From contig CP075495.1 in assembly GCA_021613535.1 (NCBI GenBank), positions 15,128,001 to 15,192,000 of the forward strand: 64,000 nucleotides of DNA. Reading direction: 5' to 3'. The position numbers and the translations under genes were made by a program. This DNA is from Adineta vaga. Lineage: Eukaryota > Animalia > Rotifera. The notes below the pieces were generated by a model. That model ran no database searches. It saw only the letters and a program-made list of their open reading frames with translations, and had not been told where the DNA came from. Positions 21,874 through 51,565 of this stretch are shown here, in pieces; within the stretch, counting starts at the first letter, position 1, and the number at the start of each line of letters is the position of its first letter.

Positions 21874-22178
21874 CGTTCATGCCCAGCAGGTTTTAGAGCA
21901 ATTGAAAATTTGCGCATTTTTTTAAGATGGCATATTGAAACATACAGCAAACAATCTGATTATTTATGGTGATGAAATTTGTTTACAACTATTTAATGGG
22001 TACATCGATCTAATTTTTTTGAGATGGTTTCATATAAAGTCGAAACAATTTTAATTAAGCATCTTTGAAATAACTAAAACAAGTTAATTTTTATCGATTT
22101 TTTTTCTTTCTGTTTAGACCAATAAAAAACTCCGCAGTGCTTCTTCGTCACCTCGAAAAAAGCTCACAAAAACAAGTA

Positions 22179-23766
22179 ACGGGTGTCACAAAATGAATGA
22201 GCCTCTCCGTATTTTTCATTTTTCTCCCCTATTTTTCGGCATGGGAAAGCAAATTTTTTTATCAAAAGATTCCTCGTCAAATTCTCTACAAACGTAGATA
22301 CTTTTATTATCTTAACTAATTTCCACCATTCTGTGACATACGATACAATCTATTGGTCCAAGAAGCACAACTTTCAAAGACAATATTTTTTCGAATTTTT
22401 TTTACTGCACGTTTTAATTCTTGGATCAATGTTGGTTTAGATGTCACTTTATTCCAGTTGATCACCTTCACAAATTCATCCCAAATACAGTAATCCAATG
22501 GGTTAAGATCAGGGCTGTTAGGTGGCCAATGGTCTTTATCAATAAATACTGGAAAATTGTCTCGATCCTCTTTTTTTATTTTCTCAACATTTTTTGCAAA
22601 AGATTCAGTTTTTTGATAATGAAAAGCGAAGATTTACAGAAAGTGGTAGCCTTGAAACATCAAAATGGTGACAATCCAACGAAGGTTTTTCGTGATTTGA
22701 ATGGGGTAATCGGTTTAGCAACTATCAAAAGATGGTACAAAATGATTGATGAAACTGGTTCTATCAATTTATCAGTGTCATCAGGTCGTCCACGTACAGC
22801 TCGAACGAATGCCAACATCAAGAAGGTCAAGCAAAAGCTACAACGAAAAAAGATATCGACTAGAGGACTTGCACTTGATCTGAGTATATCGCACGAAAGT
22901 GCTCGCAGAATTCTTCGGGATGATCTTGGCTGTCGACCTTATAAACATGTGATCGAACCAGCACTTACCGAAGAGCAGAAAGAAAAAAGAAAAAAGTTTG
23001 CCAATTGGATACGAACAAATTTTCGAAAGCAGGAAACATTGAAAATTCTGTTTTCTGACGAAAAAATGTTCGACATTGATGGAGCTTACAATAGCCAGAA
23101 CGATCGTATATGGGCTGCAAATCGTGATGAAGCTAATCAGAAAGGTGGTATTCATCAGAAAAAAAAATTTCCTGAAAAAGTCATGGTATGGCTTGGTGTA
23201 TGTTCCAAAGATGTATCTCCATTGGTGATATTTGAAAAAGGTACAGTCAACCATGATCGATACATTAAGGAGGTGCTTCCTGTGGCACTTAAATATGGAA
23301 ATCATGTGTTTGGAAACGATTGGACATTCCAACAAGATGGGGCTAGACTCCATACTCATCGTTTAACACAACAATGGTGTCATGACAATTTTCCAGCATT
23401 TATTGATAAAGACCATTGGCCACCTAACAGCCCTGATCTTAACCCATTGGATTACTGTATTTGGGATGAATTTGTGAAGGTGATCAACTGGAATAAAGTG
23501 ACATCTAAACCAACATTGATCCAAGAATTAAAACGTGCAGTAAAAAAAATTCGAAAAAATATTGTCTTTGAAAGTTGTGCTTCTTGGACCAATAGATTGT
23601 ATCGTATGTCACAGAATGGTGGAAATTATTTAAGATAATAAAAGTATCTACGTTTGTAGAGAATTTGACGAGGAATCTTTTGATAAAAAAATTTGCTTTC
23701 CCATGCCGAAAAATAGGGGAGAAAAATGAAAAATACGGAGAGGCTCATTCATTTTGTGACACCCGT
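22179..23766 (+). mobile_element. Tc1/mariner superfamily maT (DD37D) transposon with 383-bp inverted arms
   Basis: TA on both flanks (22177-78, 23767-68); termini ACGGGTGTCACAAAATG; 22179-22561 is the reverse complement of 23384-23766. Confidence 0.93.
22619..23638 (+). CDS. DD37D transposase (339 aa), intact
   Basis: HTH-type N-terminus, 'FSDEKMF', 'FQQDGA', 'WPPNSPDLNPLDY'; 37 residues between the second and third Asp. The ORF-track start at 22421 is read-through of the inverted arm. Confidence 0.92.
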   Translation: MKSEDLQKVVALKHQNGDNPTKVFRDLNGVIGLATIKRWYKMIDETGSINLSVSSGRPRTARTNANIKKVKQKLQRKKISTRGLALDLSISHESARRILRDDLGCRPYKHVIEPALTEEQKEKRKKFANWIRTNFRKQETLKILFSDEKMFDIDGAYNSQNDRIWAANRDEANQKGGIHQKKKFPEKVMVWLGVCSKDVSPLVIFEKGTVNHDRYIKEVLPVALKYGNHVFGNDWTFQQDGARLHTHRLTQQWCHDNFPAFIDKDHWPPNSPDLNPLDYCIWDEFVKVINWNKVTSKPTLIQELKRAVKKIRKNIVFESCASWTNRLYRMSQNGGNYLR

Positions 23767-23956
23767 TAGCACACCATCTGCGATGGCTTCCATTTCTTCT
23801 ATTACGAAAAACATATCCAATAGTTCCGAATTCATCGACCAAATTCTTCGTAAATTCAAATAATAACCATGAACGTCTTGTCATATAAAAAACATAAAAC
23901 AATGTTTTTTCTCTTGATATCTGTTTCTATGTTCTTTTTCTCATTTTTTTTATACA

Positions 23957-24228
23957 ATGAAAAGTTACCTATCAACAGTATTGTTGGTTCTTAGTGATTT
24001 TACCAGGAAATTTCTTTGTAAAATTCATTCACTACAACAAATATTTGCAACTGATATTCACTCAACACCCAATTAATCATTTGATCGACAACGAATTTAT
24101 CAACATTGTAGAGTAAGTCTTAATTTTTCTTCTTAAATTAAACATAATTGTTATAATTATTATTGAATCAAAGAAATTTTTCAAGAGCTTAATCACTTAA
24201 TTGATGAAATCAAAAGAGATCAATTTCG
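23957..24228 (+). pseudogene. Decayed, diverged 5' part of ART-TPR copy 2
   Basis: 'SDFTRKFLCKIHSLQQIFATDIHST' aligns with copy 1 'GDFAQKLINKVHLLQQIFSIYIYST'. Stop at 24074, donor at 24113, acceptor lost, then 'IKEIFQELNHLIDEIKRDQF' (copy 1: IKGIFEDFNELINQLQSDQV), out of frame with ATG 24229. Confidence 0.75.
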
Positions 24229-25794
24229 ATGAGTCTATTTGATGAAAATAATGATTGTGAACAATCAACAACTGGACTTGATGGTCGATTTCTTCATTCT
24301 CAATTATTAATATCATGTCTTCTTCGAATGGAAAGTTCATCACAAGATAGACATGAACTTGTTGCCAAATGTCGAAAACTTTATAAAGAAATTCCAAATC
24401 AATTGAAAATTGTCGATGAATTTGAAAAAGAATATTCATCGGAAGAATCATTAAGATGGTATACAAGAGAATCGTTCCTCTATCGATTATTAAATAAAGC
24501 ATTACGAGTTCAAAATATTGATTTTCTTTTTCTCTTTCGTTTCTTTATTCATGATCTCGAAAAACAACTTCAGCAACGACGACATTCCACACCTATTCGA
24601 GTTTATCGAGGTCAATTAATGGCGATTGAAGAATTGAATATTTTACAGAAATCCAAAGGAAAATTTATTTCAGTCAATTCATTTTTCTCTACAAGTTCTA
24701 ATCGTGAATTGGCATTGTTATATCTTGGTAATCATAGTGCTGATCAATCTTTATATCGAATTTTATTTGAAATCGATGCCGATCCAAGAAAAATTGATGT
24801 GAAATCATTTGCTGATCTTTCAAGTTTAAGTTATTTTCCTGAAGATGAATTTTTAATGGCATTAGGATCAGTTTTTTGTATAAAAAATGTTTATCTTGGT
24901 CAAAATCAAATTTGGTTTATTGAAATGAGTTTATGTAGTAATAATGATGGTGATTTACAAGATACGTTCTTTCATATGCATAATCAATATAATACAAATA
25001 ATAAAGATTTACTTCTATTAGGAAATCATCTGATTGATATGGCAAATTTTGATGATGCAGAAAAATATCTTTGTCGATTATTAAAACAATTATCAACAAA
25101 AGACAAAGATATTTGTAAGTGTTATCATGGACTAAGTAAAGTTTCATTTGAAAAAGGAAATTATCCTCTATGTTTGAACTATCTTAAAAAAGCTTGCACA
25201 ATTTTACAAAAAATTGATTCAAATGATACAGGAATCGGTTATCTTTATAATAGTATGGGAGAAGTTTATCAAAAACAAGGTGATCAAAAACGCGCATTAG
25301 AATATTATTATTTAGCATTGACAACTTTTGAAAGAAAATTCGATCGAAATGATGAAAATATTGCTTGGTGTTATAATAATTTAGGTATTGTTTATCTTGA
25401 ACAAGAAGTTTATTACATTGCACGTGGTTATTTTTCACAAGCTTTGAAAATTAAAACGAAATTACTTCCACCAAAACATCCTTGTCTCGGTAATACATAT
25501 AATAATCTTGCTAATGTTCATTATTATCTAAAAGAATATGATCAAGCATTGGAAAATTATCAAATATGTTATGAAATCTTCCAAAAATCGCTTACAGTAC
25601 GACATCCTTCGATTGCAAGAGTTTTGAAAAATATTGGAATTGTTTATGAAGCCAAACGCGAATTTCAGAAAGCCTTAAAACACTATCAAAAAGCAGCGGG
25701 AATTCGAGAGAAAATTATGCTAACAACACATCCGGATTGGATTGAAATCAAAAATGATCTTATTCGTGTTTTATCCAAATTAAAGTTAAAATAG
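24229..25794 (+). CDS. ART-TPR copy 2, N-terminally truncated (521 aa)
   Basis: Four amino-acid differences from 16586-18151 (I/L, H/Q, S/C, A/G); catalytic motifs retained. Confidence 0.8.
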   Translation: MSLFDENNDCEQSTTGLDGRFLHSQLLISCLLRMESSSQDRHELVAKCRKLYKEIPNQLKIVDEFEKEYSSEESLRWYTRESFLYRLLNKALRVQNIDFLFLFRFFIHDLEKQLQQRRHSTPIRVYRGQLMAIEELNILQKSKGKFISVNSFFSTSSNRELALLYLGNHSADQSLYRILFEIDADPRKIDVKSFADLSSLSYFPEDEFLMALGSVFCIKNVYLGQNQIWFIEMSLCSNNDGDLQDTFFHMHNQYNTNNKDLLLLGNHLIDMANFDDAEKYLCRLLKQLSTKDKDICKCYHGLSKVSFEKGNYPLCLNYLKKACTILQKIDSNDTGIGYLYNSMGEVYQKQGDQKRALEYYYLALTTFERKFDRNDENIAWCYNNLGIVYLEQEVYYIARGYFSQALKIKTKLLPPKHPCLGNTYNNLANVHYYLKEYDQALENYQICYEIFQKSLTVRHPSIARVLKNIGIVYEAKREFQKALKHYQKAAGIREKIMLTTHPDWIEIKNDLIRVLSKLKLK

Positions 25795-26004
25795 ATGAAC
25801 AAAAATATGCGCTTTTATAGATGTGGTAGTTTCTTTTGTTTTTCTCTTCATAGTACATATTGTTTTAAAATATGGTTTGTATATTTGCTATACTGTAACT
25901 CCGGAATTATTTTTAAAGAATGTTCTTTTATTTATCAGGAAAATAAAGATTGAATGAAACGATTTTATTATGTCATCATGAATATTTCACAATTTTAAAA
26001 TCTT

Positions 26005-26357
26005 TCAAAGAAATTTTTGAAATCCTGGTTTAGCAACAGCCTTGGTACATCGGTTAGTACATCCACAAGCTGGTCGACAACATTTTTCATCAGCATCACA
26101 TTCATTGTCAGCGCGACAACCACCAATTTGTCGTGGAGATAATATCAATGAAATTGGATTAGGTGGACAGTAGATAGCACACGTCATTATATGCATTGGA
26201 CAAAAACCTATTAGAAATGAAAATTTTATCTTCTCTTTTCGAAATGTTTTCAAGACAAATCCTTACCAACATGTGCTGCTTGAAGATCTGGTACTAAACT
26301 TAAGGCAGTACTATAGCAGATCAAGACAACGAGTGAGATAAGAGCAAGAAAACGCAT
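26005..26357 (-). CDS. Secreted WAP-domain protein (97 aa); exons 26357-26267 and 26207-26005
   Basis: Signal peptide MRFLALISLVVLICYSTALS; 59-nt GT-AG intron; 'GFCP..C...C...CRADNECDADEKCCRPACGCTNRC' WAP cysteine pattern. Confidence 0.85.
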
Positions 26358-26582: not shown

Positions 26583-27335
26583 TTATTTACAAACTAAATC
26601 TTTAAGATTACGATAATGCGTTCGTTGTTTAATCGAAAGATGTTCAATTGCATAACTTAACATAATACGTGGCATTTGTGCAGCATATTGATCGAGAAAC
26701 TTCAGAAGAATTTTCTTATTAATTCTTTTCCCTGTTTCACGTAACATCCATCCAACAGCTTTATGCATTAAAGGTTCACGATCATGTAAAAGTATTTTTG
26801 CCAGATCAAATGTTGTTGATCCATCTTTTCGTTTGATAAATGCAAATGTAGCAATAATAGCTGCTCGTCTTTCCCATAATTGAGAACTCGATGCTAGATC
26901 ATAGAGTAATTGACGTGATTGATCTTCAAGATAATTTCCAAGCAAATGTTCAGCTGAGCAATCAACCAAATCCCAATTATTTACTCGACCACGTTTCAAT
27001 GCTTTGACATAGAATGATGACAATTCAGCACGAAGTTTATCATCACGTGTTGTTGATCGACTTGCAGCAAGATATCGATAAACAAGAATGAAAAGAGCAG
27101 TTTGACGATGTTCATGTATAGGACTGTTGAAAAGATGATCGATTTCGATTAGAGATAGAGTAAGAAAACGTTTAGCGACTAGACGATTCGCAGGAACACG
27201 AACACCGATAAAAATATCACCGTGTGCATATTCACCTTCACCAGTTTTAAAGAAACGTTGCAAAATAGGAATTCGTTTTGAATCAGCTTGTTCAGCAAGT
27301 GCTAGTTTGACATCTTCTGCAGTTTCTGTACTCAT
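26583..27335 (-). CDS. alkD: DNA alkylation repair enzyme (AlkD-family HEAT-repeat glycosylase), bacterial type
   Basis: 'RFFKTGEGEYAHGDIFIGVRVP', 'VNNWDLVD', 'LWERR', 'HKAVGWMLRE' motifs; probable 5'UTR intron 27387-27336. Confidence 0.88.
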   Translation of the reverse strand: MSTETAEDVKLALAEQADSKRIPILQRFFKTGEGEYAHGDIFIGVRVPANRLVAKRFLTLSLIEIDHLFNSPIHEHRQTALFILVYRYLAASRSTTRDDKLRAELSSFYVKALKRGRVNNWDLVDCSAEHLLGNYLEDQSRQLLYDLASSSQLWERRAAIIATFAFIKRKDGSTTFDLAKILLHDREPLMHKAVGWMLRETGKRINKKILLKFLDQYAAQMPRIMLSYAIEHLSIKQRTHYRNLKDLVCK

Positions 27336-28146: not shown

Positions 28147-29067
28147 ATGTACGCAAAAGATCATGGCTCAACAATTCGATTAATGACCTACAATATTCGA
28201 ATGGACACACCTGATGATGGAAGTAATCGGTGGGATCGTCGAAAAGATCGTGTATTTCGATTAATTCAACATTATCAACCTGATTTATTTGGAGTCCAAG
28301 AAGCCCTACCTAATCAACTTGCTGATCTACAAAATGCATTTCCATCTTTTGGTTGGTATGGTGTTGGTCGTGATGATGGTCAAAACAATGGAGAATTTTC
28401 TGCAATATTCTATCGTCGAAATGTATTTGATTTACAACAACAAGGAACATTTTGGTTATCTGAAACACCTGATACGCCTGGTAGTAAAGGGTGGGATGCA
28501 GCTCTACCACGTATTTGTACTTGGGTTATACTTCGACATCGCCGAACAAATCAAAAGATAGCTCATTTTAATACACATTTAGATCATGTTGGTCAAACTG
28601 CTCGTCGAGAAGGTGCTCGTCTAATTGTCTCACGTATTCAACAAATCACTCGATCGGCAATGCCAACAATTTTAACAGGTGATTTCAATACAGATCCACA
28701 ATCGGATGCGTATGGTGCAATTGTTGCAGAAAGTTCTTTACAAGATGCCAAACAAATAACAAAATCACCTCATCGTGGACCCGATGGTACTTGGTCAACA
28801 TTTAATACATGGCGTCGAATTGGACAACGATTAGATTATATTTTCGTTACACCTCAATACATTCGAGTATTAAATCATTCACATTCGACATTTTCAGAAA
28901 ATTTACGATATCCATCTGATCATTTACCAGTCATTGCAACTTTAGCTCTTCAAACGGGAAATCATAAACGAAGACATGTTAGAAAATATCCAAGATTCTA
29001 TCCACATCATTATTACCCATCAGCAGCAGTACCTCATTTTCCACATCGAAATTATTATTATTATTAA
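28147..29067 (+). CDS. Endonuclease/exonuclease/phosphatase (EEP) family protein, bacterial type
   Basis: 'MTYNIR', 'PDLFGVQE', 'GVGRDDG', 'TFWLSETP', 'NTHLDH', 'TGDFN', 'LDYIFV', 'PSDHLPV'; intronless. Confidence 0.9.
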   Translation: MYAKDHGSTIRLMTYNIRMDTPDDGSNRWDRRKDRVFRLIQHYQPDLFGVQEALPNQLADLQNAFPSFGWYGVGRDDGQNNGEFSAIFYRRNVFDLQQQGTFWLSETPDTPGSKGWDAALPRICTWVILRHRRTNQKIAHFNTHLDHVGQTARREGARLIVSRIQQITRSAMPTILTGDFNTDPQSDAYGAIVAESSLQDAKQITKSPHRGPDGTWSTFNTWRRIGQRLDYIFVTPQYIRVLNHSHSTFSENLRYPSDHLPVIATLALQTGNHKRRHVRKYPRFYPHHYYPSAAVPHFPHRNYYYY

Positions 29068-29150
29068 ACTTTTGGAATGAAAGCAATTTTTTTTCAATTG
29101 TTATTTTTTATTAAATAATTCTATAAAATTCGTCTGTAGTTTTTTCAGAA

Positions 29151-29448
29151 CTATATGATCGATTTAAAATTTACCACAAATTCAAATTCCTTACGAGCTT
29201 CGATTTACATAGAGAATGACACAATGTGGTATTCATTTTCAATCAGTCAGTCGATGTTTGTATTCAGATTTTATTAGAAGAAAATCATTGATGACACACA
29301 TGTTCTTCATGAAAATGCCCTAAGAAAGAAAGTACCAGGAAACTTCTAAGTCGCAATATATACTTGAAATTGAATAATATTATTGAAAATATACTTTAGG
29401 CTTGGGACCCATTGTAAATAATCACTCATGGAAGGTAAGTTAATATAT
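29151..29448 (+). repeat. Duplicate of 32578-32871 (upstream region and non-coding first exon of DED-jacalin gene A)
   Basis: Near-identical ~295 bp; both copies end just after GAAG/GTAAGT. Confidence 0.85.
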
Positions 29449-30093
29449 TTTCGCATTATTACTTAGTATTTCTAATATGGACGAATATTTTCCGTACGTT
29501 TGTTTTGATGCTACCATCATTAATCATTCAGTTGTAGTACGAGCTATAGTTGCCTAAAGAGACTGCGGCGTATATGATGAATAATCGTTTTCGCTTTAGT
29601 GTGAATAGCTCTATTCAACTTTTTTTGTTTTCTTATTGAGATTATAAAGTAGAAAATACCAAGGAGTTGTTGTAATCAGTCAACATTAACATTAAGAATG
29701 CTTCAATTAAATGAAGAATATAGAAGTGTTACATATAATCGGAAGTTGAATGAATTCTATTGAAGTAGTAATTCAATAGGGCTTGAAAAACGAGATTAAA
29801 AGTTATTCGAAAAACAAAAGACTAAAGATGAAATCATTTCTGAAATGAAAAAACAGTTTTTATTATTATGATTAAGATTTCTTTTCTGAAAATTCATTGA
29901 TTATCTCAGGTTAACTATTTTGAGACTCAAATGAAAATATCTTCACGATTCATTACGTTCAGATTTTACAACGTTATTACATCATCGTAATAGAATCTGT
30001 TAACAAGATAATCGAGATGGTTTAGAATCATATCAATTCTTGTATTCATCTCCTCTCTCAAGTAAAGATTGAATGAGTCCATCATATGGTGAT

Positions 30094-30398
30094 GAGTAGT
30101 GTAGAAATCGTTAATTCGATTCGAGTATTAAACTTCTTCAACTTCTAAAGTTTCAGTTTAGAATTCGAGTACTCGAGTTTTAAACTATGGTATTTCATAA
30201 GTATCCTAACATATGGTATCGTCGATTATTTTAAATGTGCATTTAGGTTATATAGTGTAAATGCTTTCAAGACCGTTATCAATCAATGTCTTTCCCGCTG
30301 AGTACGCTTTTTGTGTGTTCAGTGTGACAGAGAGGTCCAAAGCAATCTCCATTTGTTCTTTGCGTTCCAACATCCTCACCCACGCCCACACCCTCAAG
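30094..30398 (+). repeat. Dispersed repeat; internally deleted copy at 47033-47133
   Basis: 'GAGTAGTGTA.AAATCGTTAATTCGATTC...GAGTAC' and 'CCCACACCCTCAAGA' occur in both places; they are ~200 bp apart here and nearly adjacent at 47 kb. Confidence 0.7.
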
Positions 30399-30419
30399 AA
30401 AAATATTTTTGAGGAAGTA

Positions 30420-31532
30420 CCCATGTCGAGAAAATCGCCGCGATTTTTGCGATTTTAAAAAAAATCGGCGTAAAATCGCGATTAATCATATTTTTAAAAA
30501 AAATCGCCGATTAAATCATGTTTAATCATGATAATGATGAAAGAAACGATTTTTAAGAAATCGCCGATTAATCGCAACGATTAATCGTGATAGATTGGAA
30601 TTTTTTACGTCAGGTGTACGATTTTTCTTATATTACCTTAAGTTTGATATATTCATACATAATTTCTATTTTACATATATCAGATTATGTTTTTAGACAT
30701 TTAATTACAAGAAAAAAAATTATTGTTGAATTTGATGTCGTTAGTGTCGCGTTCATTTGGTTGGGTATTCATTATATAGACTAACGTCTCGTCTGTCGTC
30801 TATGGTCTTTGTAATAATTATTTCATTATGTATAGAAGAAAATTTGCTAAGTCTTAGAACACGACTTATTTATTGATTTCTTTTAGATTTTATCACTATA
30901 CTTTTGAATCAAGTTGAAGTTCCAGTATTAATAACAAGTGCTGAATCTGTAAGCATCATAGGCATAAATATATTCACTTTTCCTTCTAATTTTTTTTCTA
31001 ATTAGGTTCACAAATCGCGTATTAATCGAAGAAACTGATCGTTTTGAAATTCCAGCTGCAAAAACAGCATAGCGAAACTCTTTTTACTCTCCTTCTTTAT
31101 CTTAATATTTTTTTTGTATTATAACTATATTTTCTCGTTCATATCTCTACATGTGTTAATTGTAACTTTCTTTCTCGTTTTATTGTATATGTACTGTGAT
31201 CTTTCTCATGTGGTTTTTCTTTCCAAAATCAATTTAACTGTAACAGGCGTTCTAGTGAATAATTGTAGTTGAATAAAATATGATTTAAAAACCTAGCTAT
31301 ATCTATTCCATCAGCTTGTAGGAAAACTACCGATTAATCGCGATTATACCGAATATAATCGGCGATACTACTGCAGTAATACATTGAAAAATCAGCGATA
31401 AATCGTGATAAATCATGGTAATCGTCACAAATATCGTGAAAAATCGGCGATTAATCGCTGATTAATTGGACGATTATCGTTTCGATAAATCGCGATATAT
31501 CGCCAATTTTTGAGCGATTTTCATGACATGGG
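30420..31532. mobile_element. Non-autonomous TIR element, CMC/EnSpm-like (CCCATG termini)
   Basis: CCCATGTCGAGAAAATCGC ... GCGATTTTCATGACATGGG; TA on both flanks; subterminal AATCG(C)CGATT arrays. Confidence 0.82.
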
Positions 31533-31700: not shown

Positions 31701-32166
31701 CAACAACAAAGAACATTTTGGTTATCTGAAACACCTGTACGCCTGGTAGTAAAGGGTGGGATGCAGCTCTACCACGTATTTGTACTTGGTTTATACTTCG
31801 ACATCGACGAACAAATCACTCGATCGGCAATTCCAACAATTTTAACAGACGATTTCAAAACCTCATCGTGGACCTGATGGTACTTGGTTAACATTTAATA
31901 CATGGCGTCGAATTGCACAACGATTAGATTATATTTTTGTTACATCTCAATACATTTGACATTTTCAGAAAATTTACGATATCCATCTGATCATTTACCA
32001 GTCATTGCAACTTTAGCTCTTCAAATAGGAAACCATCAACGAAGACATGTTAGAAAATATCGAAGATTGTATTCCCATCATTATTACCCATCAGCAGCAG
32101 TACCTTATTTCCCATATCGAAATTATTATTATTATTACACTTTTGGAATGAAAGCATTTTTTTTTC
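31701..32166 (+). pseudogene. Deleted, frameshifted duplicate of the EEP gene 3' part
   Basis: Aligns to 28435-29096 with three internal deletions, 1-nt indels, and the stop TAA changed to TAC. Confidence 0.9.
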
Positions 32167-32974
32167 AGAATAACAAAAATCAGTATGCATCCCTCAATTT
32201 TGTTTTATTTAAGGAATCTCAATGAAACATATTTCTTTAGTTTTTTTTCTGTACATGTTATTTATATCTCTTTTATTTTCGTCTGATGATTTAACACGTT
32301 TTATCCGTTTGTTCTTTCTGACGGCTCTATACATCAAAGCATATTATTCAGATTCTTTCTTCCTATACATGAAACCCAATGTCACGTCCTTCGAAGACAG
32401 TAACTATATCATAGTGATAAGCATAAGAAAATCATTTTCTTTAAAAGTCAATTAATTGATGAATATTATTACTATAGAGTATAAGAAATTGTTATCAAGG
32501 TAAGAAGAGGATAGGATTTTATTAATAGAGTTGCAGAGATTTATTATGCACTTCTATAACGTTGACGGCTTGTATCGCTATATGATCGATTTGAAATTTA
32601 CCACAAAATCAAATTTCCGACGAGCTTCGATTTACATAGAGAATGACACAATGTTATATTCATTTTCAATCAGTCAATCGATGTTTGTATTCAGATTTTA
32701 TTAGAAGAAAATCATTGATGACACACATGTTCTTCATGAAAATGCCCTAAGAAAGTACCAGAAAACTTCTAAGTCGCAATATATACTTGAAATTGAATAG
32801 AATTATTGAAAATATTCTTTAGGCTGGGGATCTATTGTAAATAATCATTCACGGAAGGTAAGTTAATATATACACATGAAATTAAAATGCTAAACAGAAT
32901 GCTTATCGATGTGATGAATAAATTTCTAAAAGAAAAAGAATCATTTGATGTATTTTGCGTCTTTTAGATGTTAA

Positions 32975-34556
32975 ATGGATAATCAGCATTTTCGTTCGAT
33001 TCTCCTAAAACTTCAAGATCGTTTAAGCGATAATGATCGTCAACGATTGCACTTCTTTCTGGGAAATGACATCCCTAGAAGAATACGTGATAATCCAACA
33101 TTAAATGGCACTCTGAATTTATTAGAATGCCTTTTTGATCAAGACAAAATCAATGAACAAGATTTCACGTTTCTTATAAATGCTTTTACACAAATTCAAT
33201 GTGTTGACGCAGTTAAACTTCTCAAAGGTACATCCTATCCCTATTATTCATGGATAGATAGAACTGCTATTTAAGTATTAAGAGATGACAAAAAGGGCAT
33301 CGTACGTTTATACTACACATTATTACTAATTATCAGTTAGTCGTAATAGCTATTTTTAGTACAAGAGTATCATCCTAGAGCTATACTCTTTTGGAATGAA
33401 TATATCGATCTGTCGTCAAGAAGCAAAAGAAATTGTCTTTTTGACATAGAATATAAACAACAAATGCAAATAGGTTGCTGTAATCAATCAAAACTAACAG
33501 CGATAATGCCTCCATTAAGTGAAGAAGTTATGATGGATCAAGATTTTGATAAAAGTGCTTCAGTTAATCGTAAGTTTAAATCCTAAATACAATTTCAAAT
33601 TTGTTTAATTTTAATCGAATAGTTTTAGGACAAACCAGTAGTTTTGGTAATTATAATCAAATAATAAATACTACTAGTACAAATATAAATCCTGTAACAA
33701 TTACTGTTGATAATGGAGAATCTTCATCGTCAAAATCGAAAGAAAATCGTTTGTTTTATTTTTCATTAAAAACGGTTCTATATTTCTTTTTTATTATTTT
33801 ATTATTATTAACGATTATGTTTGTTTTATTATTATTATTAAGCAAATTTATAGTTAAAACCAATTCAATGGATCTGCAAAAAAATTATGAAAATCTCTTA
33901 ATAGAACAAAAACGTAAAGATGAAATTATGTTTCAAATGAGAAAACAAATAGAAAATGCATCGATTGAACAACAGAATCACAAAAGTAAAGAAAAGAATA
34001 TTCGTTTTCTTTTTTTTTGTAAATATATCTTTTAGGTAATTTATTAATCTTCTTGGGTCAACAATTCGGTGATTCGAATGAGAAATCATTTGATGATTCT
34101 CTTCGTTCGGACTTTATAAGTTCTTATTTTTTAAATGGAATCTATGCGCAAGATGATGGTCATGGTTTCGAATCATATCAATTCTTCTATTTATCTCCTC
34201 ATGATGATCGAAGTGTGATTGACTCAAATCGTCATGGAAATCAAACGGTTGATTTTAGATACAAATTTTATTTTTCAAAAAATGAAAAAATCAACAAAGT
34301 TGAAGGAAGATTAGTTAAAAAGGATATCCCTTTGCCGAATGGAACGAACCGTTCAATGACAATTATCACAGGACTACGTTTTTTTTCAAATGAACACCGA
34401 GCAAGTCCGTCGTATCATTATGAATTAGGTGAAGAATTTAGTGAAGAACATAAAGGATATACATTAGGATATGTTACAGGAAGATCAGCGGAATATCTTG
34501 AACAAGTGCAATTTGTTTGGTATCGAACACTTAGTCAAAACTCGGATGAAGATTAA
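32975..34556 (+). CDS. DED - transmembrane - coiled coil - jacalin-like lectin protein A; exons 32975-33227, 33450-33569, ~33623-33985, 34036-34556 (~418 aa)
   Basis: N-terminal DED-like 'FRSILLKLQDRLSDNDRQRLHFF...LLECLFDQDKINEQDFTFLINAF..IQC'; TM 'VLYFFFIILLLLTIMFVLLLLL'; jacalin motifs 'IITGLRFFSN' and 'GYTLGYVTGRSAEYLEQVQFVW'. All splice phases are consistent; 5'UTR intron 32858-32967. Confidence 0.82.
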
Positions 34557-35128
34557 TCTGAATACATCTATTTACATTTTTTCTTTTTTCTGTTCTATTA
34601 TAATAAATGCAATATTGTTAAGAATTATACAAAAAAATAACAAGTTGAACTATTCTATTATTAGGCTAAATATTGATTTAACTTTACTATTTTAGTAAAT
34701 CTCGATGGTTGTTTTCTAAAAAATATATAAGAAGGAACATGTGTCTATCTTTTCCTCATCAGCATAATATGTTTTAAATAAGAACAAATGTTAAGATTAC
34801 TTAAAACTTGTAAATATGATGTGTCTTCATTTGGTTTGTACTTTCGACTAAGCGATATCTATTGAGATTTTATCTATTCTATTCATTCTTCATATCGTGC
34901 CATTCGTTTGTCTCGAATAATATATAAAAACGAAAAACAACAACCCTTCTTTCTTATATTCATTCCATTCTTGATGTTTTTTATGCAGATAATAAAAAAT
35001 TGATCAGTTAGATTGAAACAATTCAAGTTAATCCTAAGATTTCTGGTGCTTTTCTATCAATGAATAATTGAACACATGGTAAATGTTCAATCATAGTCTG
35101 ACGTTGAATAATGTATGATTATAGATAA

Positions 35129-36631
35129 ATGACAACGAGTCAAGCAAGAGTTGATAATTTACGTAGTGTTCTTGTTCAAGTTCCCGGTCTCCTCAGTGAG
35201 AATGATCGATATAGTTTTCATTTTTTAATTGGAACATATGTACCACGAGTAATTCGCGAGAATCCAACTTATCAGGGAACATTTGCACTTATTGAATCAT
35301 TATTTGATCAAAATATTATTAATGATGATGATATTACGTTTCTTATTGATGCATTTAAAACGATTCGATGTTTTACAATTGCAAACATTTTAGAAAGTAA
35401 GCTTGTTTTTTTTTACATCATAATTCTTCATTGTAGTATGTTTTTTTCTTCTTCAATATTTTAGATTATATAAATCAAATTAAATCAGATTCAAAACATG
35501 ATTCTAAACAAATAGTTCGATCACTCATTGATGAACTTAATTCAGATCACATTGATAAAATTATTGTTCCAAAAAGACGTGAGTAATCTTAAATAGAAGC
35601 CACTAAAACAATTCTTCTCTCTCATTCAATCAGCTCCCGGATCTCCATCAAATCATAAAAAGAAATCAAAATTATCTGTAGATTCAACTAAAATTACCAG
35701 TGAAACCCGAGACTATTTATCATCGAGAAGAAAAATCTATTCTATTTTAACTTTTCTATCAATCATTGGATGTATTGTAATAGTTGCTATTTCAACAAGA
35801 AAAACTAATCTGAGAAATGCTACACAAACAACAGAAGATTTCTCAACAACAACAAAAATATATGGAAACGTGAAAAAAGCAGTTAATATTCCCGTTGAAA
35901 AGCGAAATTCAACTTTATACAGACAGGTATTTGGTACATCAAACAATGAAGTTTTATCAACATCAACAAAAAAAGACGAAAGTGCGAAAACAACTCATAG
36001 TGTTCCTATTGAATATGAAAATAGAATTAAATACGGACGGGTATTTGTTAAATCAAACGTTAAAGATTTATCAACATCAGCAAAAAGAGACGAAAATGCG
36101 AAAATAACACTTAGTATTCCAAATGGAGATAGAAATCCAATTAAATATGGAGAGGTATTTGGTAAATCAAACGGTGAAGATTTTGATGATAAGGATATAA
36201 ATAGTTTTAAACCCTTATCACATTATCTTCATGGAATCCGTGTATACGATAATAAGACTGGTTTAGAATCGTATCAATTTATATATATACTTAGTCCCAA
36301 CGATCAAAATCCTATTGTATCAAATCGTTATGGAAATCAAACGAACCTTCTCGACGATGAAGATAATGTTCCAAAAGATGAAAAATTTACCAAAGTTCAA
36401 GGAAGACTAATCAATAAGAATATCACTTTAACGAATGAAACGAATCATTCAATTACGATTATTACAGGACTTCGTTTTCGTTCAAATAAAGATCGACTAA
36501 CTTCATTGTATGATTATGAATTAGGTGAAGAATTTAGTGAAGAATATGAAGGATATACATTAGGATATGTTACAGGAAGATCAGCGGAATATCTTGAACA
36601 AGTGCAATTTGTTTGGTATCGAACAATGTAA
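35129..36631 (+). CDS. DED - transmembrane - repeat stalk - jacalin-like lectin protein B; exons 35129-35396, 35465-35578, 35634-36631
   Basis: Paralogous DED exon; TM 'IYSILTFLSIIGCIVIVAIS'; same jacalin C-terminus; phases consistent. Confidence 0.82.
35835..36175 (+). repeat. Three 114-bp (38-aa) coding tandem repeats in the stalk of protein B
   Basis: TT(A/C)TCAACA anchors at 35840, 35954 and 36068; units end 'YRQVFGTSN', 'YGRVFVKSN', 'YGEVFGKSN'. Confidence 0.8.
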
Positions 36632-37369
36632 AAAAAATCTAATGAAGATTAGTTACTGAATTTTTCTTTGTATACTTATTGAATTCATATAAAAATTATA
36701 ATAAATAATGTTATGATTCCCATTTCTTTTAATTACATATAATATTTTTCTTTAAGTAATCACTAACTACCATTGATTAGATGAAAGATTTTACTTATTG
36801 ATGATAACGAATTAAATTCATGAAGATCAAAGAATACTGTAAGGTAGCATGCACAATTATTTCATACATTCTTCATAGAGATAAGATTCCTCACTGAATT
36901 TTATAATATATACTTATTTATTCTACTCAGATATTTTCCTTTTTATCGCATATCCATTTGTTCTTGATGATTCTGCTTCTTTTCGTAGATTGTTTGAATT
37001 TTATTAGTTAGTTGATTTTCCTTTCTGAATAAATTCATCAAGAAATCTGCCGGAAATATTCAGTTTTAACTATTTTTCATAATGTACTTGAAGTTAATAT
37101 ATCAAATTCTAAGAACAAATAAAACTTAAAATCTACGACTTTCAATTCAAGTTCGTGAATTCAATCATGTATAAATATCTGACATCATTTTTTTGTTTTG
37201 TTTTTGAAGAATTTTATTAAGAATATAAGATCAAAAAGTGAAAAGAAAAAGTCGACAAATCGATGAATAAAATACAAACAAAAGAGAGGAAAACGAAAAG
37301 AATAATTATTCATTCATTCATTTCTCTCATTTTGTTGTTGTTCTTCTTCATTTGATTGTGTTCTTGCAC

Positions 37370-37951
37370 TTAACAGAATCGATCGAGACGGTATCCTTTG
37401 ACTGAAAAGTCAAACATTTCACCAACAATATCACGTGATAAGTTTGTATATTTGTCACCTTCCATCATAGCAGCTTCAGCTAATTCAGTTGTTTCAAGTT
37501 TGTATGTACGGAATTGAAATGTACCAGTGATTTGTTTGAAGTTTTCCATGTTCAAACGAATGATGTTGTGATTTAAAGCCATACTTTCTGGTGATTTGAC
37601 TGTTGAAAACATGAATCCGAAATCTTTCATTTCAATTGAACTAATTTGTTTAGCATCACATCGCCATTTACCATTGAGATCACCGCGTGGTTGGAAGAAT
37701 AATTCGCTGGCTTCGAGTTGTTTGAAACCAGTTTGATCGTTTCCACTCCATGTATAACTTCCATCAGCACGCATTGTCAAGATCATGTACCATGAGTGTT
37801 TTGGTGAAGTCATATGTAAATAATACATACCAGCAAATCGTGAATAACATGTTGGAACAGCTGAACATGTCATTGGTTCTTCAGTAACTGGTGTTGTTGC
37901 TTGAGCCAAAGCAAATAAGGCAACAGCAATGATAACTGCAGCTTTGAACAT
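37370..37951 (-). CDS. Secreted 193-aa protein of unknown function, copy 1
   Basis: Signal peptide MFKAAVIIAVALFALAQA; intronless; TATA at 38028-38035; four Cys. Confidence 0.85.
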   Translation of the reverse strand: MFKAAVIIAVALFALAQATTPVTEEPMTCSAVPTCYSRFAGMYYLHMTSPKHSWYMILTMRADGSYTWSGNDQTGFKQLEASELFFQPRGDLNGKWRCDAKQISSIEMKDFGFMFSTVKSPESMALNHNIIRLNMENFKQITGTFQFRTYKLETTELAEAAMMEGDKYTNLSRDIVGEMFDFSVKGYRLDRFC

Positions 37952-39586
37952 TTTGATATTGTTTAAGCGAAATAAATAAATGAATTAAATCAAATGAATG
38001 GATAAAGTTTCATATGAATTTGCAGAGTATTTATACTGATCAGCATCACAATGTTAACTACCTGGAATTATGTTTTTCTTCTTTATTATCATTGTTAAAC
38101 ATTGTTGTAGGTCATCTTCTTTCTTGTCAGTATGACTAGTCCAATGTACATAGTGTGAATCTATTTCTTTCTTCCACGTGATGATGATTTCATATCGTCG
38201 ATAGAAATCGACGAAGGAATAATACGAAGACGATTACTTCTTGAAATAGAAGAACGAAGAAAAAAATCAACGGGTCGAACGATATCTTTTTCTTGTGTTA
38301 AATATAACAGAAACTGTCGTACCTTCATCCACACCCTCAAGATAATATTGGACGTCGATTTGTTTTTTGTTGTGTTAATGGAAAAGCTCGAGAATAAAAA
38401 TCTTTTTCTGAAAGTCTAATTCTGATAAATTCTCGTCTGTCATCGATTATTTAATTCTATGTAAAGAAAAGTAAATTCAAATACGAGTTGAATTATTGTT
38501 GATAATGATAGTGATAAAATATGAAATATTTATGTCTGGATAACATGATGTTACTAAAAACTAATTAAAATATATATGAATGGTTGAAAATATCCTTTTT
38601 ATTTACCGAAACAGAGGTTATATCAATCAATTTCACTTAGTCTTAATGTTTTTATCTTTTGGAAAGAAAGTCTAAAGTTCTTCATGTCAATTTTATTCTA
38701 TAGCATTAGTTGATAAATCGAAACGTTACATATCGTAAGATTACTGACAAAAACTGTGTTTCGAATTTCAACTTTTGAGAATCAATGGACATACAAAGTA
38801 AAAGATGATTTATCTATTAAGATCGTTTACAGATTAGAGTTTTTCATTCTCGAGTAATTTCTTTAATCATTCAGCTTCTGTTGTCGCAAAAATCTTCAAC
38901 GAATACACAATATTTCGGTAGTTTTCATTTTATCAGGACTTCAGGGAAAATAAAATTTAATATTCATAAGTACAAACGATTTCAAGAGTAAATGAATAGA
39001 ATTCCATCCTAGTTTTAATACGATCAACTATTAACTCAGTATTCTATTATAGATCATGAAGAACAACCAACACTTTTCTTCATACTTAGTTTCTGAATTA
39101 ATTTCAATAGGTTGTTAAAGATATCAGTTCTAATTATGAAATACAAAATCTGTCATGATCTAGTTTTATTCATTGCATTCATAAGAACAATGATCAATAT
39201 AATATCTATGTTATTGAGTGATGAACATGATATTTTATATCTTATATCACAATTCGATGTTTTCATTAATACTAAAGAGCAATAATGAACATGACATAAA
39301 TGTATGTATATCTTTATTAGCTTCAACACGGGAAAAGATATCGATCGACCCGTTGATTCTTTCTTCGTTCTTCTGTTTCAAGAAGTAATCGTCTTATTAT
39401 TATTCCTTCGTCGATTTCTATCGACGATATGAAATCATCATCACGTGGAAGAAAGAAATAGATTCACACTATGTACATTGGACTAGTCATACTGACAAGA
39501 AAGAAGATGACCTACAACAATGTTTAACAATGATAATAAAGAAGAAAAACATAATTCCAGGTAGTTAACATTGTGATGCTGATCAG

Positions 39587-39594
39587 TATAAATA
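39587..39594 (+). promoter_or_regulatory. TATA box (mirror copy at 38028-38035)
   Basis: TATAAATA ~80 nt upstream of ATG 39671, conserved in both arms. Confidence 0.6.
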
Positions 39595-39670
39595 CTCTGC
39601 AAATTCATATGAAACTTTATCCATTCATTTGATTTAATTCATTTATTTATTTCGATTAAACGATATCAAA

Positions 39671-40252
39671 ATGTTCAAAGCTGCAGTTATCATTGCTGTT
39701 GCCTTATTTGCTTTGGCTCAAGCAACAACACCATTTACTGAAGAACCAATGACATGTTCAGCTGCTCCAACATGTTATTCACGATTTGCTGGTATTTATT
39801 ATTTACATATGACATCACCAAAACACTCATGGTACATGATCTTGACAATGCGTGCTGATGGAAGTTATACATGGAGTGGAAACGATCAAACTGGTGTCAA
39901 ACAACTCGAAGCCAGCGAATTATTCTTCCAACCACGTGGTGATCTCAATGGTAAATGGCGATGTGATGCTAAACAAGTTAGTTCAATTGAAATGAAAGAT
40001 TTCGGATTCATGTTTTCAACAGTCAAATCACCAGAAAGTATGGCTTTAAATCACAACATCATTCGTTTGAACATGGAAAACTTCAAACAAATCACTGGTA
40101 CATTTCAATTCCGTACATACAAACTTGAAACAACTGAATTAGCTGAAGCTGCTATGATGGAAGGTGACAAATATACAAATTTATCACGTGATATTGTTGG
40201 TGAAATGTTTGACTTTTCAGTCAAAGGATACCGTCTCGATCGATTCTGTTAA
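39671..40252 (+). CDS. Secreted 193-aa protein of unknown function, copy 2
   Basis: Five amino-acid differences from copy 1. Confidence 0.85.
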   Translation: MFKAAVIIAVALFALAQATTPFTEEPMTCSAAPTCYSRFAGIYYLHMTSPKHSWYMILTMRADGSYTWSGNDQTGVKQLEASELFFQPRGDLNGKWRCDAKQVSSIEMKDFGFMFSTVKSPESMALNHNIIRLNMENFKQITGTFQFRTYKLETTELAEAAMMEGDKYTNLSRDIVGEMFDFSVKGYRLDRFC

Positions 40253-41735
40253 GTGCAAGAACACAATCAAATGAAGAAGAACAACAACAAAATGAGAGAA
40301 ATGAATGAATGAATAATTATTCTTTTCGTTTTCCTCTCTTTTGTTTGTATTTTATTCATCGATTTGTCGACTTTTTCTTTTCACTTTTTGATCTTATATT
40401 CTTAATAAAATTCTTCAAAAACAAAAGACAAATTTTAATGTATTTGCGAAACAATCATAGTTATTTAGAAGTAGAAAACGAGATAAGGAAATATCAAAAA
40501 CAAAGAATATTGAAAAAATCCTCTTTTAGTATGTGTATCTGTCGTGGAAAGAACTCGTTCAGAATCATCAAGGATATATATGAAGAAAAGAAAAACAACT
40601 TTGACAAATATCAGTTTTAGATTTCAAAGTTTTGTTTCTTTCTGCTTATTCAAATTGTTTTTCTATTGCAATGAAACCTTGTTGGTTGAAGTAAAAAACA
40701 CGATTATTTCACATTTATTTCTCAGTATAGACGGAAAGTCGAAGGCACTGGTGTATATCATTCTTCAACATGTATTTTATTACGGTCACGATTCGTTTAG
40801 AAAGATTTTCAAATGTTTTTGAAACGATAACAACATAACGAACAATCGTTTGAAAGAGAATTTCATGAGATGTTTCATTATGTTTAGTATTGTTACGTTA
40901 AGAGACAGTTAACTCTTTATGAAATTATTGTAGATTCAGATTCAGTTATAGTGTGCTGTTTTTTGCATAGAAGATTCTTTAGAAAATAGAAAACATAAAC
41001 ATCTTGAAAACATATTTTCTCTCAAGTAAATAATTTTTTTGATGTTTTCTTTGCAACATATTTCGTTATAATATTTCATTCTTCTCAACGGTGAAAACAC
41101 TAGAAATATGTTTGTTTATGGATTTGATTCGCATCCTAGCAACTTAATCTGCCTCTTTTTTTCTTTTCTTTTCTTTTCTTTTCTTTTCGGCGATGAAACC
41201 ACTAAATTTTCTAATCGACACCGTTACTGCGCATTTATGAGAAACTGACAGTTGATGATATTCAAGTTTTTGCAAGAAACAGGAAAAAAATATGCTAAGA
41301 AAATCTTTTTTAAAAAAAAACTGGAAAAGAGGAAATGCGACGCATGATTTTCTGATGAAGTTATTCAAATTAATAGTAACCACAATTCTAAATTTACCAT
41401 AGAGACATGACTGAATCGTCTAGTTCATTTTGACAAAGCATTAATTATTTAGATCATTCCTACGCCTTCATCTTTCACTTAATAAAACGATTAAATCTAT
41501 TTTTTCTTTTTTATCTTTATTTATAACTATCAACCTCAAACAAAAGTAACCCATAGTCATCATGAAGTATCGTAAATAATAAAGTAAATTTTTATGTTTT
41601 TCTACTGCTATCTTACAAGTATAACATTTTTCTCCGAAAAAAATATCTCAAAACATATTAGATTAAATTTTCAGTTCTTATCGAACAGCTAAATATATTA
41701 ATAATTCTTTTTTCAATTTTGCAGACAAACTTAAA

Positions 41736-44641
41736 ATGTCGACTGATCGTTCATCAACAACAAATGATTCATTTTGTCGTACAGAACATCTTTATACAAA
41801 TCATTTTACATGTTCACTTAAAAATGATATTCAACTTTATCAATATGATATATCAGTTGAAGAGTTGATTCTTACGAATTGGACTAAATGTGAAAATCGT
41901 TTACGATGTGCTAATATTGTTCGAAAGTTAACACCAAATAATCAATTGGAACCAAATCTATTTATATGGTATGATGAACAAGGATATTTATATAGTACAT
42001 CATATTTGGAACCACGATCGATGCGCAGTAGAGATGGTCAAAGTCAATTTCATATTCATGGATTATGTGATCAGTGGTCAACAAATGATATTATGGATTA
42101 TATTGAAGGAAAAACGAAAACATATCCATATAAAGCTATAAATTGTCTTGAATGTCTTTTAAAAAATTCTCTTCAAGGTCGAATAAGAATAATTAAACAT
42201 AAATATTATTTTACAGATGAATCAGCAACAACACTTGACAATGGTTTTGAATTAGGATACGGATTTATACAATCACTTCATCTTGTTGATCATAATTTAA
42301 CATTAAATATTGAAACAAAATCAACAATATTCTATCCGAATATGTCACTATTGCAATTTATTCATCAACAAATCAATTCAAATCAAATATTAACATACAA
42401 AGATTATGATCAACTTAATTTTAGATTACAAAAATGTACTATTATTAGTACAGGTGAATCAAACAATGGATTTGATTATGAATTTAATAAATTTGATGAT
42501 CGTCGTCCTGCTAATATACAACATGAAACAGGTCAATCATTAATTGATTATTATCAAAATGAGAAAAATATTCAATTAACAGAATTAAATTATCCATGTA
42601 TTGAAGTATATCGACGAAATGATTATACGAAAAAATATTATCTACCATTAGAAGTTTGTTACATTAAACCATGACAAATTTATGAATCTGTAAGTTTATT
42701 TTAATAAAAATCATACTTCTTTTTATTCAGTTTTTTTCAGTCACTTGAAATGCAAAATGATAATACACATATTCCAACACCAGAAGAACGTTATAATTAT
42801 ACAAGACATGTCCTAGATCATTGTGAATATAATTCGAGTCTACTTTGTCAAGCAGTTGGTTTGCATATTGATGATGACGAAATGTTAGAATTTAATGCGG
42901 GAATTTTACCATTACCATATATCAAAACAAGTTTGAAATACCAAGCTCATATAGATGTTGATAGTGGTCAAATTCTTCTCGATGAACGTTTACAAAAACC
43001 AAAATCAATATCAACTTTAGCTGTAACATATTTTGGTAGAGATTTTCAAGGAAGAAAAGAAGTTTTTGATTTATTTACAGATAAATTAATTGATGTGAGT
43101 CGTTATTATTGAAATTTGAGAATCTAATATTTATTGAAATTATTTTATTTTAGACTATGGAACGTTATAGTCTTTATGGACGTCATGAAGAACATATTGT
43201 CGAACCAAATTTCGAACAAATTTCTCAATACTTTCGTTCAATGAGCGAACAGATGTGTGAATTTGTTGTTTGTATTATGCATGGACAGTCCGAAGAAGAA
43301 CTTACAGAACTTCGAAATAATATTAAAAAATGTGGAACAATTCTATATGGTAAATGATCTGTTAGATACCTATTTTGAAAGTCTTAATTTATTTAGGTAT
43401 TATGACTCAATGTGCTGTATATTCTGAAATATATATGGATGAACGAATGACTAATTATTGTGATAATTTAATACGAAAAATTAATTTTAAAAATGGAGGA
43501 ATTAATACAGAAGTTGTTTTATATTCAGCATTCAAGGATAGAAATATCGATAAAGATAAATTGATGTTTTTTGGTGGTGCTGTTTTACATCCAATGAATG
43601 TAACTTGTCAGAATCCATCGATTGCAGGTATGAAATGATTAATGATGATTTCGTCTTCTAATTAAGTATTCCATTTTATTTTTTTAGCCATAGTTGGTTC
43701 AGGTAATTCATCGTGTTCAACAACAGCTACGCGTGTTTCTAAACAATATCCAAAAGAAGGAAATCGTTCGATTCATATGATTGTTGGTATGGCAGAAATG
43801 ATTATAGAATTATTAGATTATTATCGTCATGAAAATCAATATTTACCTAATAAAGTTATCTTTTATAGAGATGGTAAATACATTATTCTTCAAGAGATAT
43901 CTCATGGAAAACAATGTTTGATTTTAGGAATCAATAATGAAGAATTTTTAGAAGTTCTTGATTATGAAATAGCAGCAATTCGTCGTGCATTTTTTAGTTA
44001 GTACAATAAATATCTACTATTGCTTTAAAATATATTTTTATTGTAGAAATCTATGGTGATAAACGTAATCATCCTCATCTTACTTTTATTATTGTTAATC
44101 ATCGACATCATACACGGTTTTTTACCTACAAACGAAATTTATATCGAACAGATGATGCATCAGGAGAACGCCCAAAAGAAACAGATAATATGTCAATTGG
44201 TTGTGTTATTGATACAACAATTGTTCATCCATATCAACATAATTTCTATTTAAATTCACATAACACTGATCGTGGTGTGAATAATCCATCGCTTTATGAT
44301 GTTATTCTAAATGAAAATGATTTCACATTAAATGAATTAGAATTATTAACATATTATTTATGTTTTACTGATTCTCGATCATCATCATCAGAAGCTACTC
44401 CATCAGTTGTTCATCAAGCAAATAAAGCGACAATAAATGCTCAAGATTTATTTGATAATTCTACCAAGTAGGATTAAAGAAAAAGCAAGAAACTTCTTTT
44501 AAAACTTAAATGTATTTTAGTTCAACAGGATCAAATCGTAATAAAAGAATGCAATCATTACAAAATACAATTCCAATTGATTTAGATTATGAAATTCTTC
44601 AAGTTCATGAAAATCTTCGTAATCGACCTGTTTTTGCTTAA
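41736..44641 (+). pseudogene. Divergent Argonaute (N-PAZ-MID-PIWI), 8 exons, with one in-frame TGA at 42672-42674
   Basis: 'LYTNHF', 'LYQYDISV', PAZ end 'YLPLEVCYI', 'TQC', 'KINFKNGGIN', 'IFYRDG', 'RHHTRFF', 'FYLNSH', C-terminus 'VHENLRNRPVFA*'. Exons 41736-42689, 42741-43094, 43154-43349, 43397-43627, 43688-43873, 43928-43996, 44047-44467, 44521-44641 are all in phase. Confidence 0.85.
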
Positions 44642-50900: not shown

Positions 50901-51565
50901 GCAATCAAACGAGAATCAAGACTTTGACTTCGAGGTGGAACTTTCACGCCCTTTTCGATAGAGAAAGAAAAAACGAATCGAAATCAATAAAATCTTTGTT
51001 AAATAGCTTCTTGTCAATATTTACTTGTGTATTGGTAGCTGTTTCGAAACGAAGAAATGGATGAGTAAGATCATGTTTGTCTAAAGCCATATAACAATGT
51101 GTACAAAGATCAAAATCAAAACATCGAGCACATTTCCATCTCATGCCAATAATTCCATGTTTTCGACATGCATCACATATTACATTTGGATGTCGAACAC
51201 CAATTGGTGCATTATCATAAACACGTAAATCATATGCTGATTGATATCCAACACGATAACTAAAATCAATCATATTTAGTCTTTTATTTATTTCGATTAG
51301 CTAATTAAAATTACTTTGTTCGAGAGCCTGAATCCCATTGAACAACAACAGTTTTATCTGGAGATGTATTGCTTCCTGGTTTACCTAGTTCAACAACTGT
51401 ACCAACATGACCTTCACCATCATCTTGTTGAGCCCATTTCCAGTCGGGACCACGAACCTTTTTGTTTTCAAATAAAAAAAATATTCACTAATTAGCTTCA
51501 GAGAGAAAAAGAAAACGAAGAAAACAAGAATATATTTTTACCACTCTTAGACCAATTTCAAGCAT
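47912..51565 (-). CDS. mib2: E3 ubiquitin ligase mind bomb 2
   Basis: [16 protein letters not shown] (MIB-HERC2 domain), ZZ finger '[25 protein letters not shown]', second MIB-HERC2, two Mib repeats, ankyrins, and two C-terminal RINGs (MIB1 has three). Confidence 0.92.

Follow-up and report, generated by a model that had tools for sequence, protein, structure and literature searches.

Tandem genes of the bdelloid rotifer Adineta vaga encode predicted type II membrane proteins with an N-terminal death effector domain and a shuffled ectodomain

To our knowledge, death effector domains (DEDs) have been described almost exclusively in soluble proteins that belong to the caspase-8 pathway. Type II lectin receptors like Dectin-1 carry a stalk and a C-terminal lectin-type domain of the C-type lectin fold, and they signal through tyrosine motifs. 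The closest precedent for a membrane protein with its own cytosolic DED comes from the oyster Crassostrea virginica, for which about 50 single-pass proteins with a Cys-rich region, a transmembrane (TM) segment, a DED and a TRADD-N domain were predicted as a lineage-specific expansion (Kaur et al. 2021, PMC8195603). In these proteins, which are known as predictions only, the N-terminal ectodomain does not vary; variation lies in the cytosolic part, where TRADD-N comes after the DED (PMC8195603). Amphioxus TNFR-caspase hybrids and invertebrate NLRs with a DED-NACHT arrangement show that a death fold can be fused straight to a sensor by domain shuffling (PMC2575513).

We analysed a window of 64,000 nt of Adineta vaga DNA (contig CP075495.1, positions 15,128,001 to 15,192,000) that harbors two tandem genes. 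The original prediction gave both proteins an N-terminal DED, one TM helix, a stalk and a C-terminal jacalin domain with N-glycosylation sequons, and Pfam, the fold models and hydropathy agreed on this architecture. Like the oyster proteins, the rotifer proteins have their own predicted cytosolic DED and belong to an expansion of about 50 members. In contrast to the oyster proteins, their order is DED, linker, TM helix and ectodomain, so that the DED comes first in a predicted type II topology; no other cytosolic domain was found, and the part that varies would lie outside. By this order, they do not match the oyster arrangement of an N-terminal Cys-rich ectodomain and a TRADD-N after the DED. 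With Fas and TNFR1, which act with FADD and caspase-8, they share the DED fold, the FL-type patch and the expected assembly of death folds upon clustering by ligand. They differ from them by the type II build, the lack of the TNFR Cys-rich domain, a DED in place of the death domain and a replaced RxDL motif; furthermore, no DED-caspase or DED-death domain adaptor was detected in the rotifer genome by a search that gives lower bounds. The direct fusion of death fold and sensor is common to the DED-NACHT NLRs and TNFR-caspase hybrids, but the rotifer proteins have neither NTPase nor caspase, are membrane-anchored and use a swappable exon as the sensor. Type II build, stalk and C-terminal lectin-type domain resemble Dectin-1, while fold and signaling domain differ. 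No paper on this rotifer DED-TM family was found in a search of mostly open literature. For the literature searched, the statement that no receptor of this build has been characterized still stands, with the predicted oyster TM-DED proteins (PMC8195603) as the nearest case.

Gene 1 (plus strand; exons 32975-33227, 33450-33569, 33623-33985 and 34036-34556) encodes 418 aa, and gene 2 (plus strand; exons 35129-35396, 35465-35578 and 35634-36631) encodes 459 aa. Enumeration of GT-AG pairs left 12 open models for gene 1 and a single one for gene 2, and the joints were taken from RNA-like contigs. All five GT..AG joints of the two genes were present in such contigs. Three runs, each from a different study, were used, and every joint occurred in at least two of them; a DNA-like run contained none of the five. 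The RNA nature of the three runs was guessed, with the skipped introns as evidence, and the check covered the window pair only. An acceptor at 33629 for exon 3 of gene 1 was rejected, as the RNA contigs use 33623. A single spliced contig of 1160 nt spans gene 1 from the DED exon to the jacalin exon and thus excludes separate transcripts for this gene. The exons of gene 2 were connected by a chain of contigs only, with TM helix and jacalin domain in the same exon. The predicted splicing of DED and jacalin exons into one message was thereby borne out for gene 1 and is supported by the contig chain for gene 2. An artificial fusion of separate DED and jacalin genes by the prediction might be suspected, since the public model of gene 1 (I4U23_010528 of Adineta vaga, 329 aa, 99-100% identity) omits the DED exon and the family has false fusions among its database models (P0069, which was excluded). 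Such an artefact is extremely improbable: it is already refuted for gene 1 by the spliced contig, the A. ricciae orthologue of gene 1 has the same four exons (DED 88%, jacalin 63% identical), and the same build occurs in Adineta and Rotaria species.

In all three RNA-like runs, contigs begin with an AG acceptor at position 32966, which is 9 bases upstream of the start of the DED, and one of them bears eight non-genomic letters, which seem to resemble the rotifer spliced leader. Trans-splicing is documented for Adineta (PMC4824033). Based on the contig ends, the stretch 32966..32982 (+) contains a probable trans-splice acceptor (AG 32966-32967), followed by an upstream ORF of four codons (32968-32982) that overlaps the gene 1 start. 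If trans-splicing occurs at 32966, no signal-peptide exon lies upstream of gene 1. A rotifer lectin survey left out membrane proteins by design (PMC8878817), which together with the missing DED exon in the public annotation may explain why the family went unnoticed.

Exon 1 of gene 1 (32975..33227, +) encodes the DED (aa 1-84) and ends in phase 1, as seen from Pfam, profile, AlphaFold, Foldseek and contigs. Exon 1 of gene 2 (35129..35396, +) encodes a diverged DED with 49% identity to the gene 1 DED (Pfam, contigs and alignment). Pfam matched a DED with E-values of 1.4e-8 and 3e-4 for the two genes, both just under the curated cut-off, and the DED family profile matched DED1 of caspase-8 (E 6e-4). 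AlphaFold predicted six helices with a pLDDT of 91. All 50 Foldseek matches listed for this model were DEDs (PEA-15, FADD, caspase-8, cFLIP and vFLIP; TM ≤0.79), with weak E-values (>0.1), as is usual for a domain so short. When each domain was compared with the PDB as a single sequence, no match was significant, while profiles and folds succeeded. Using the DED motifs of PMC4915230, we found the FL-type motif of helix 2 aligned with KFL of caspase-8 (F27 in 35 and L29 in 28 of 37 members), and the helix-2 acid D21 was kept in 36 of the 37 DEDs. The E/D-RxDL triad is incomplete, with C-x-D-A instead of RxDL in nearly all of the 37 aligned members. Since RxDL is missing in caspase-10 too (PMC4915230), this loss does not affect the assignment of the fold. 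The models confirmed the anticipated N-terminal death fold, and the exon 1 domain is predicted to be a six-helix death fold of the DED subfamily.

The DED is followed in gene 1 by a cytosolic linker in exon 2 (33450..33569, +; contig joints), an exon that A. ricciae and A. steineri share. Exon 3 (33623..33985, +) encodes further linker, the TM helix (~33772-33843, aa 175-198) and a stalk that is probably a coiled coil (hydropathy and contigs). In gene 2, a linker exon (35465..35578, +; contig joints) precedes exon 3 (35634..36631, +), which combines the TM helix (~35735-35797, aa 162-182), a Ser/Thr-rich stalk and the jacalin domain (Pfam 36152-36610) in one exon, as indicated by Pfam and hydropathy. 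A tandem repeat of 114 bp (35834..36184, +; 3.1 copies, 75% matches) constitutes the stalk of gene 2 and extends into the first jacalin strand. Each protein has a single hydrophobic helix (21-24 residues) that is preceded by some 80-90 aa of low-complexity linker, and hydropathy revealed no N-terminal hydrophobic stretch in gene 1. The sequons named in the original prediction (NGT/NRS; NIT/NET/NHS) are present. Topology was judged from hydropathy and from statistics over 34 family proteins, which as relatives are not independent, so that p-values look stronger than they are. The net charge was +3.3 on the N side versus +1.5 on the C side in these related proteins; it was higher on the N side in 24 of the 34 and lower in 8. 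On the C side 110 sequons were observed versus 63 expected in the same non-independent set, and on the N side 64 versus 55, the excess over expectation being counted for the C side only. Charge bias and C-side sequon excess support the predicted type II topology and led us to infer strongly that the DED lies in the cytosol and the ectodomain outside, where it would be glycosylated. The TPR ectodomains of some relatives are unusual outside a cell and are a point against the reading favoured below.

Exon 4 of gene 1 (34036..34556, +) encodes the jacalin beta-prism ectodomain (Pfam 34062-34514) with three sequons and with replaced GG loop and GXXXD motif (Pfam, fold and alignment). The Pfam jacalin E-values were 4e-10 and 2e-9 for the two genes, and the jacalin model showed the beta-prism (I) fold (Foldseek E 2.6e-7). 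This fold is shared with the mannose-binding jacalin-related lectins BanLec, Heltuba and ZG16p (PMC4059138). Unlike these lectins, the rotifer proteins are predicted to be membrane-anchored, are fused to a DED and contain a long hairpin insert that is predicted to be glycosylated. The mannose site of ZG16p and plant jacalins is formed by GG loop and GXXXD (PMC4059138). In both window genes AEYLE occupies the position of GSLID of ZG16p, and the Gly-rich (GG) loop is absent as well. Both elements are also absent from Adineta relatives of the window genes, while the paralogues L002 and L010 and the Rotaria proteins P0014 and P0017 retain both. Paralogues with intact GXXXD lie at C3:3862978 and C1:11396529. 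As far as the alignment tells, the window pair probably does not bind mannose by the canonical route. As the canonical site is lost, the pair may bind another sugar or a protein, or may serve paralogues whose site is intact as a co-receptor or decoy. The proposed sensing of glycans by the jacalin lectin therefore held with respect to the fold and was weakened for this pair by the missing GG loop and GXXXD (PMC4059138).

The degenerate ligand site would also suit membrane-tethered DED inhibitors or decoys in the manner of cFLIP-S and PEA-15, in which the ectodomain sets the location or releases a brake. The single DED without enzyme and the lost RxDL fit this idea, and the upstream ORF may limit gene 1 translation. 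We nevertheless consider it quite unlikely, because a brake needs no dozens of different ectodomains and several paralogues retain GXXXD and the GG loop.

To view the pair within its family, we searched the A. vaga assembly (100.8 Mb, 6 contigs). Searches used exons by reference and, at full length, the database proteins P0004 and P0064; joined models were used for hydropathy, alignment and trees. The genome contains 54-55 related DED exons, which lie on all six chromosomes and several of which have stops. The TM exon comes next, within about 650 bp, in 30 of 32 other DED loci examined, and 24 DED loci, including the 14.94-Mb cluster on C5, were assessed from coordinates alone. Ectodomains of this genome, including those of the window pair, comprised nine jacalin domains, eight NHL propellers, four TPR and three DM9 domains, and ten further ones had no assignment. 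Among 1.84 billion cluster representatives there were 260 matches, and every named one that was looked up was from a bdelloid (Adineta, Rotaria or Didymodactylos). Other bdelloids add ricin-B and GH16 ectodomains to the family. Two GH16 members do not have the catalytic motif ExDxxE (pseudo-GH16), and non-catalytic glucan-recognition proteins likewise do without it.

The ectodomain exon of the family is spliced in phase 1 to the DED/linker/TM cassette. All introns were in phase 1 in 13 of 15 models, whatever the ectodomain; these models came from a crude splice scorer to which phase was not supplied. On the tree of DED plus linker 11 ectodomain changes were needed, with a minimum of 5, given a short alignment with many open forks. 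The AU test on the cassette tree rejected one clade of all jacalin members (p 0.0015), and one NHL clade was rejected as well. The locus C5:666983 and a locus of A. steineri, both genomic models, have orthologous cassettes that are 80% identical in DNA and then continue with NHL and pseudo-GH16, respectively. Phases, trees and this locus pair indicate that ectodomains were swapped repeatedly on the DED-TM cassette. The assumed membership in a diversifying receptor-like family was thus upheld by about 55 DED exons with swappable ectodomains.

Several database models of the family have no TM exon. These may stem from errors that skip an exon and were not taken for soluble forms. At L056 (G000:C4:11108000-11117999) four DED-jacalin genes are clustered; no TM exon was seen in one of them, C4:11117166, which may be soluble. 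Together with the TM-less database models, this locus suggests that some members may be soluble. P0165 (Didymodactylos carnosus) and P0102 are DED proteins that lack a TM segment and end in a small Cys-rich motif, which resembles a zinc finger and has no Pfam match; by their sequence they are candidates for soluble DED partners.

The two window paralogues are 58% identical in the jacalin domain, with a nearly identical 3' end, versus 49% in the DED. They differ in the stalk and the N-terminal half of the lectin, and the C-terminal binding loop is identical. The strong divergence in lectin loops and stalk that had been proposed was hence found in the stalk and the N-terminal lectin half, but not in the C-terminal binding loop, and divergence is greater in the DED than in the lectin. 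A tract at 34403..34522 (+; alignment), which covers the last lectin loop, matches gene 2 at ~36500-36620 with 87-100% DNA identity. This identity versus only 49% protein identity of the DEDs suggests gene conversion, which probably ran across the last lectin loop. Gene 2 groups with another A. ricciae protein, and as each gene has its A. ricciae counterpart, the duplication predates the species split. A decayed relic of a third copy (29666..30055, +) comprises pieces of linker, stalk and jacalin start and has no DED; it follows a duplicated copy of the DNA that lies upstream of gene 1. This segmental duplicate (28767-29448 versus 31860-32871, 88-93% identical) includes the 3' end of an endonuclease/exonuclease/phosphatase gene, the intact ORF of which is at 28147-29067. 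Between relic and duplicated segment, at 30240-30580, the G+C content is higher and the words AATCGC/GCGATT recur; this stretch looks like the end of a DNA transposon.

The A. ricciae counterparts imply that these two genes are stable. A gene 1 orthologue and a close gene 2 relative in this species favour non-immune recognition or adhesion (cell-cell, matrix, self-recognition, or ER/Golgi quality control), with a DED that only clusters or scaffolds. PEA-15, which binds ERK through its DED, was among the top Foldseek matches. NHL and TPR are general binding modules and the sugar site is lost in the pair. A large dispersed set with stops, tandem clusters, ectodomain swaps and four carbohydrate-binding folds fits a defence family better, as does a DED beside an RLR-like helicase (see below), and we regard a non-immune role as rather unlikely.

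The window contains several further features. An inverted duplication (37190-38290 versus 39333-40432, 98% identical) carries an ORF of 193 aa (37370-37951 minus, 39671-40252 plus) with a signal-peptide-like start and no Pfam family. Inverted repeats of 385 bp (22177-22561 versus 23384-23768, 99.5% identical, ~820 bp apart) are possibly a foldback or other non-autonomous transposon, and an ORF of 405 aa over them has no Pfam match. A gene for a 521-aa TPR protein is present as a direct duplicate (16580-18547 versus 24223-26210, 96%). An intronless gene for a DNA alkylation repair enzyme (26583-27335, minus; PF08713, E 2e-52) may have been acquired horizontally. An Argonaute N/PAZ exon (41736-42674), a mind bomb-like gene (48257-50947; MIB/HERC2, SH3, ankyrin, RING) and a LicD-family ORF (52218-53018) are also present.

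The recruitment of DED caspases, which had been proposed for the pair, found no support. None of 70 caspase matches and none of 15 Death-domain matches in the genome fell in a gene with a detected DED, in exon-wise searches that give lower bounds. The caspase match nearest to a DED was 4.6 kb away, beyond a complete TPR reading frame. Rotifers were reported to lack a DED-containing CASP8 (PMC12066828), and bdelloids have divergent caspase-like genes, most of which show no induction by a fungal pathogen (PMC11258130). Adaptor-free death receptors that bind microbial glycans, recruit a DED caspase and kill the cell would agree with a DED profile closest to DED1 of caspase-8, the conserved FL-type patch and the 70 caspase-like matches. 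In view of the caspase results and the degenerate mannose site of the window pair, we judge such receptors to be very unlikely. A genome search for TNFR_c6 was blank, but its control was silent too, and the search was uninformative; searches for CARD and the RIG-I C-terminal domain were likewise blank and uninformative.

At G000:C5:14943574-14948903 three DEDs lie within 4.5 kb, and by coordinates the genome's best match to a ResIII-type helicase starts 400 bp behind the last one. DED and helicase fit a DED-RLR module, a probable cytosolic sensor. A cytosolic sensor thus seems to use the same type of DED, and this speaks for one DED hub common to both. A. vaga has MLKL-like proteins without RIPK (PMC11476962), and a link of these proteins to the DED receptors is speculation.

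The reading that we favour, and consider probable though far from certain, is that the window pair encodes exon-shuffled type II sensors of the cell surface (or of a lumen), in which clustering by ligand and DED-DED assembly would lead to a caspase-8-free defence output. A multivalent ligand, most likely a microbial surface, would cluster the receptors, and the clustered DEDs, with their FL-type patch kept, would assemble homotypically. The assembly would signal onward through another DED protein, with neither FADD nor caspase-8 involved, and the output would more likely be a defence signal than classical extrinsic apoptosis. Within this scheme, the window pair itself would respond to another sugar or a protein, or assist or mislead paralogues with an intact site as co-receptor or decoy. 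The change from RxDL to CxDA and the loss of GXXXD and GG loop in the pair count against the favoured reading. More tentatively, and with some doubt on our side, the genome may hold a whole caspase-8-free DED system, in which about fifty phase-1-shuffled type II receptors with lectin, pseudo-glucanase, propeller or TPR ectodomains and a DED-fused RLR-like helicase feed one DED hub.

Pathogen recognition in bdelloids is largely open, and work so far has dealt with effectors. The pair points to a candidate for a previously undescribed innate sensing pathway. With a large DED receptor family in an animal that was reported to be without DED-caspase-8, it becomes testable what a DED assembly activates. 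The cassette moreover provides a natural case in which exon shuffling has built receptors, here in an animal that is largely asexual. If the caspase-8-free system is true, it would represent a new class of animal pattern-recognition receptors and a new output of DED assembly.
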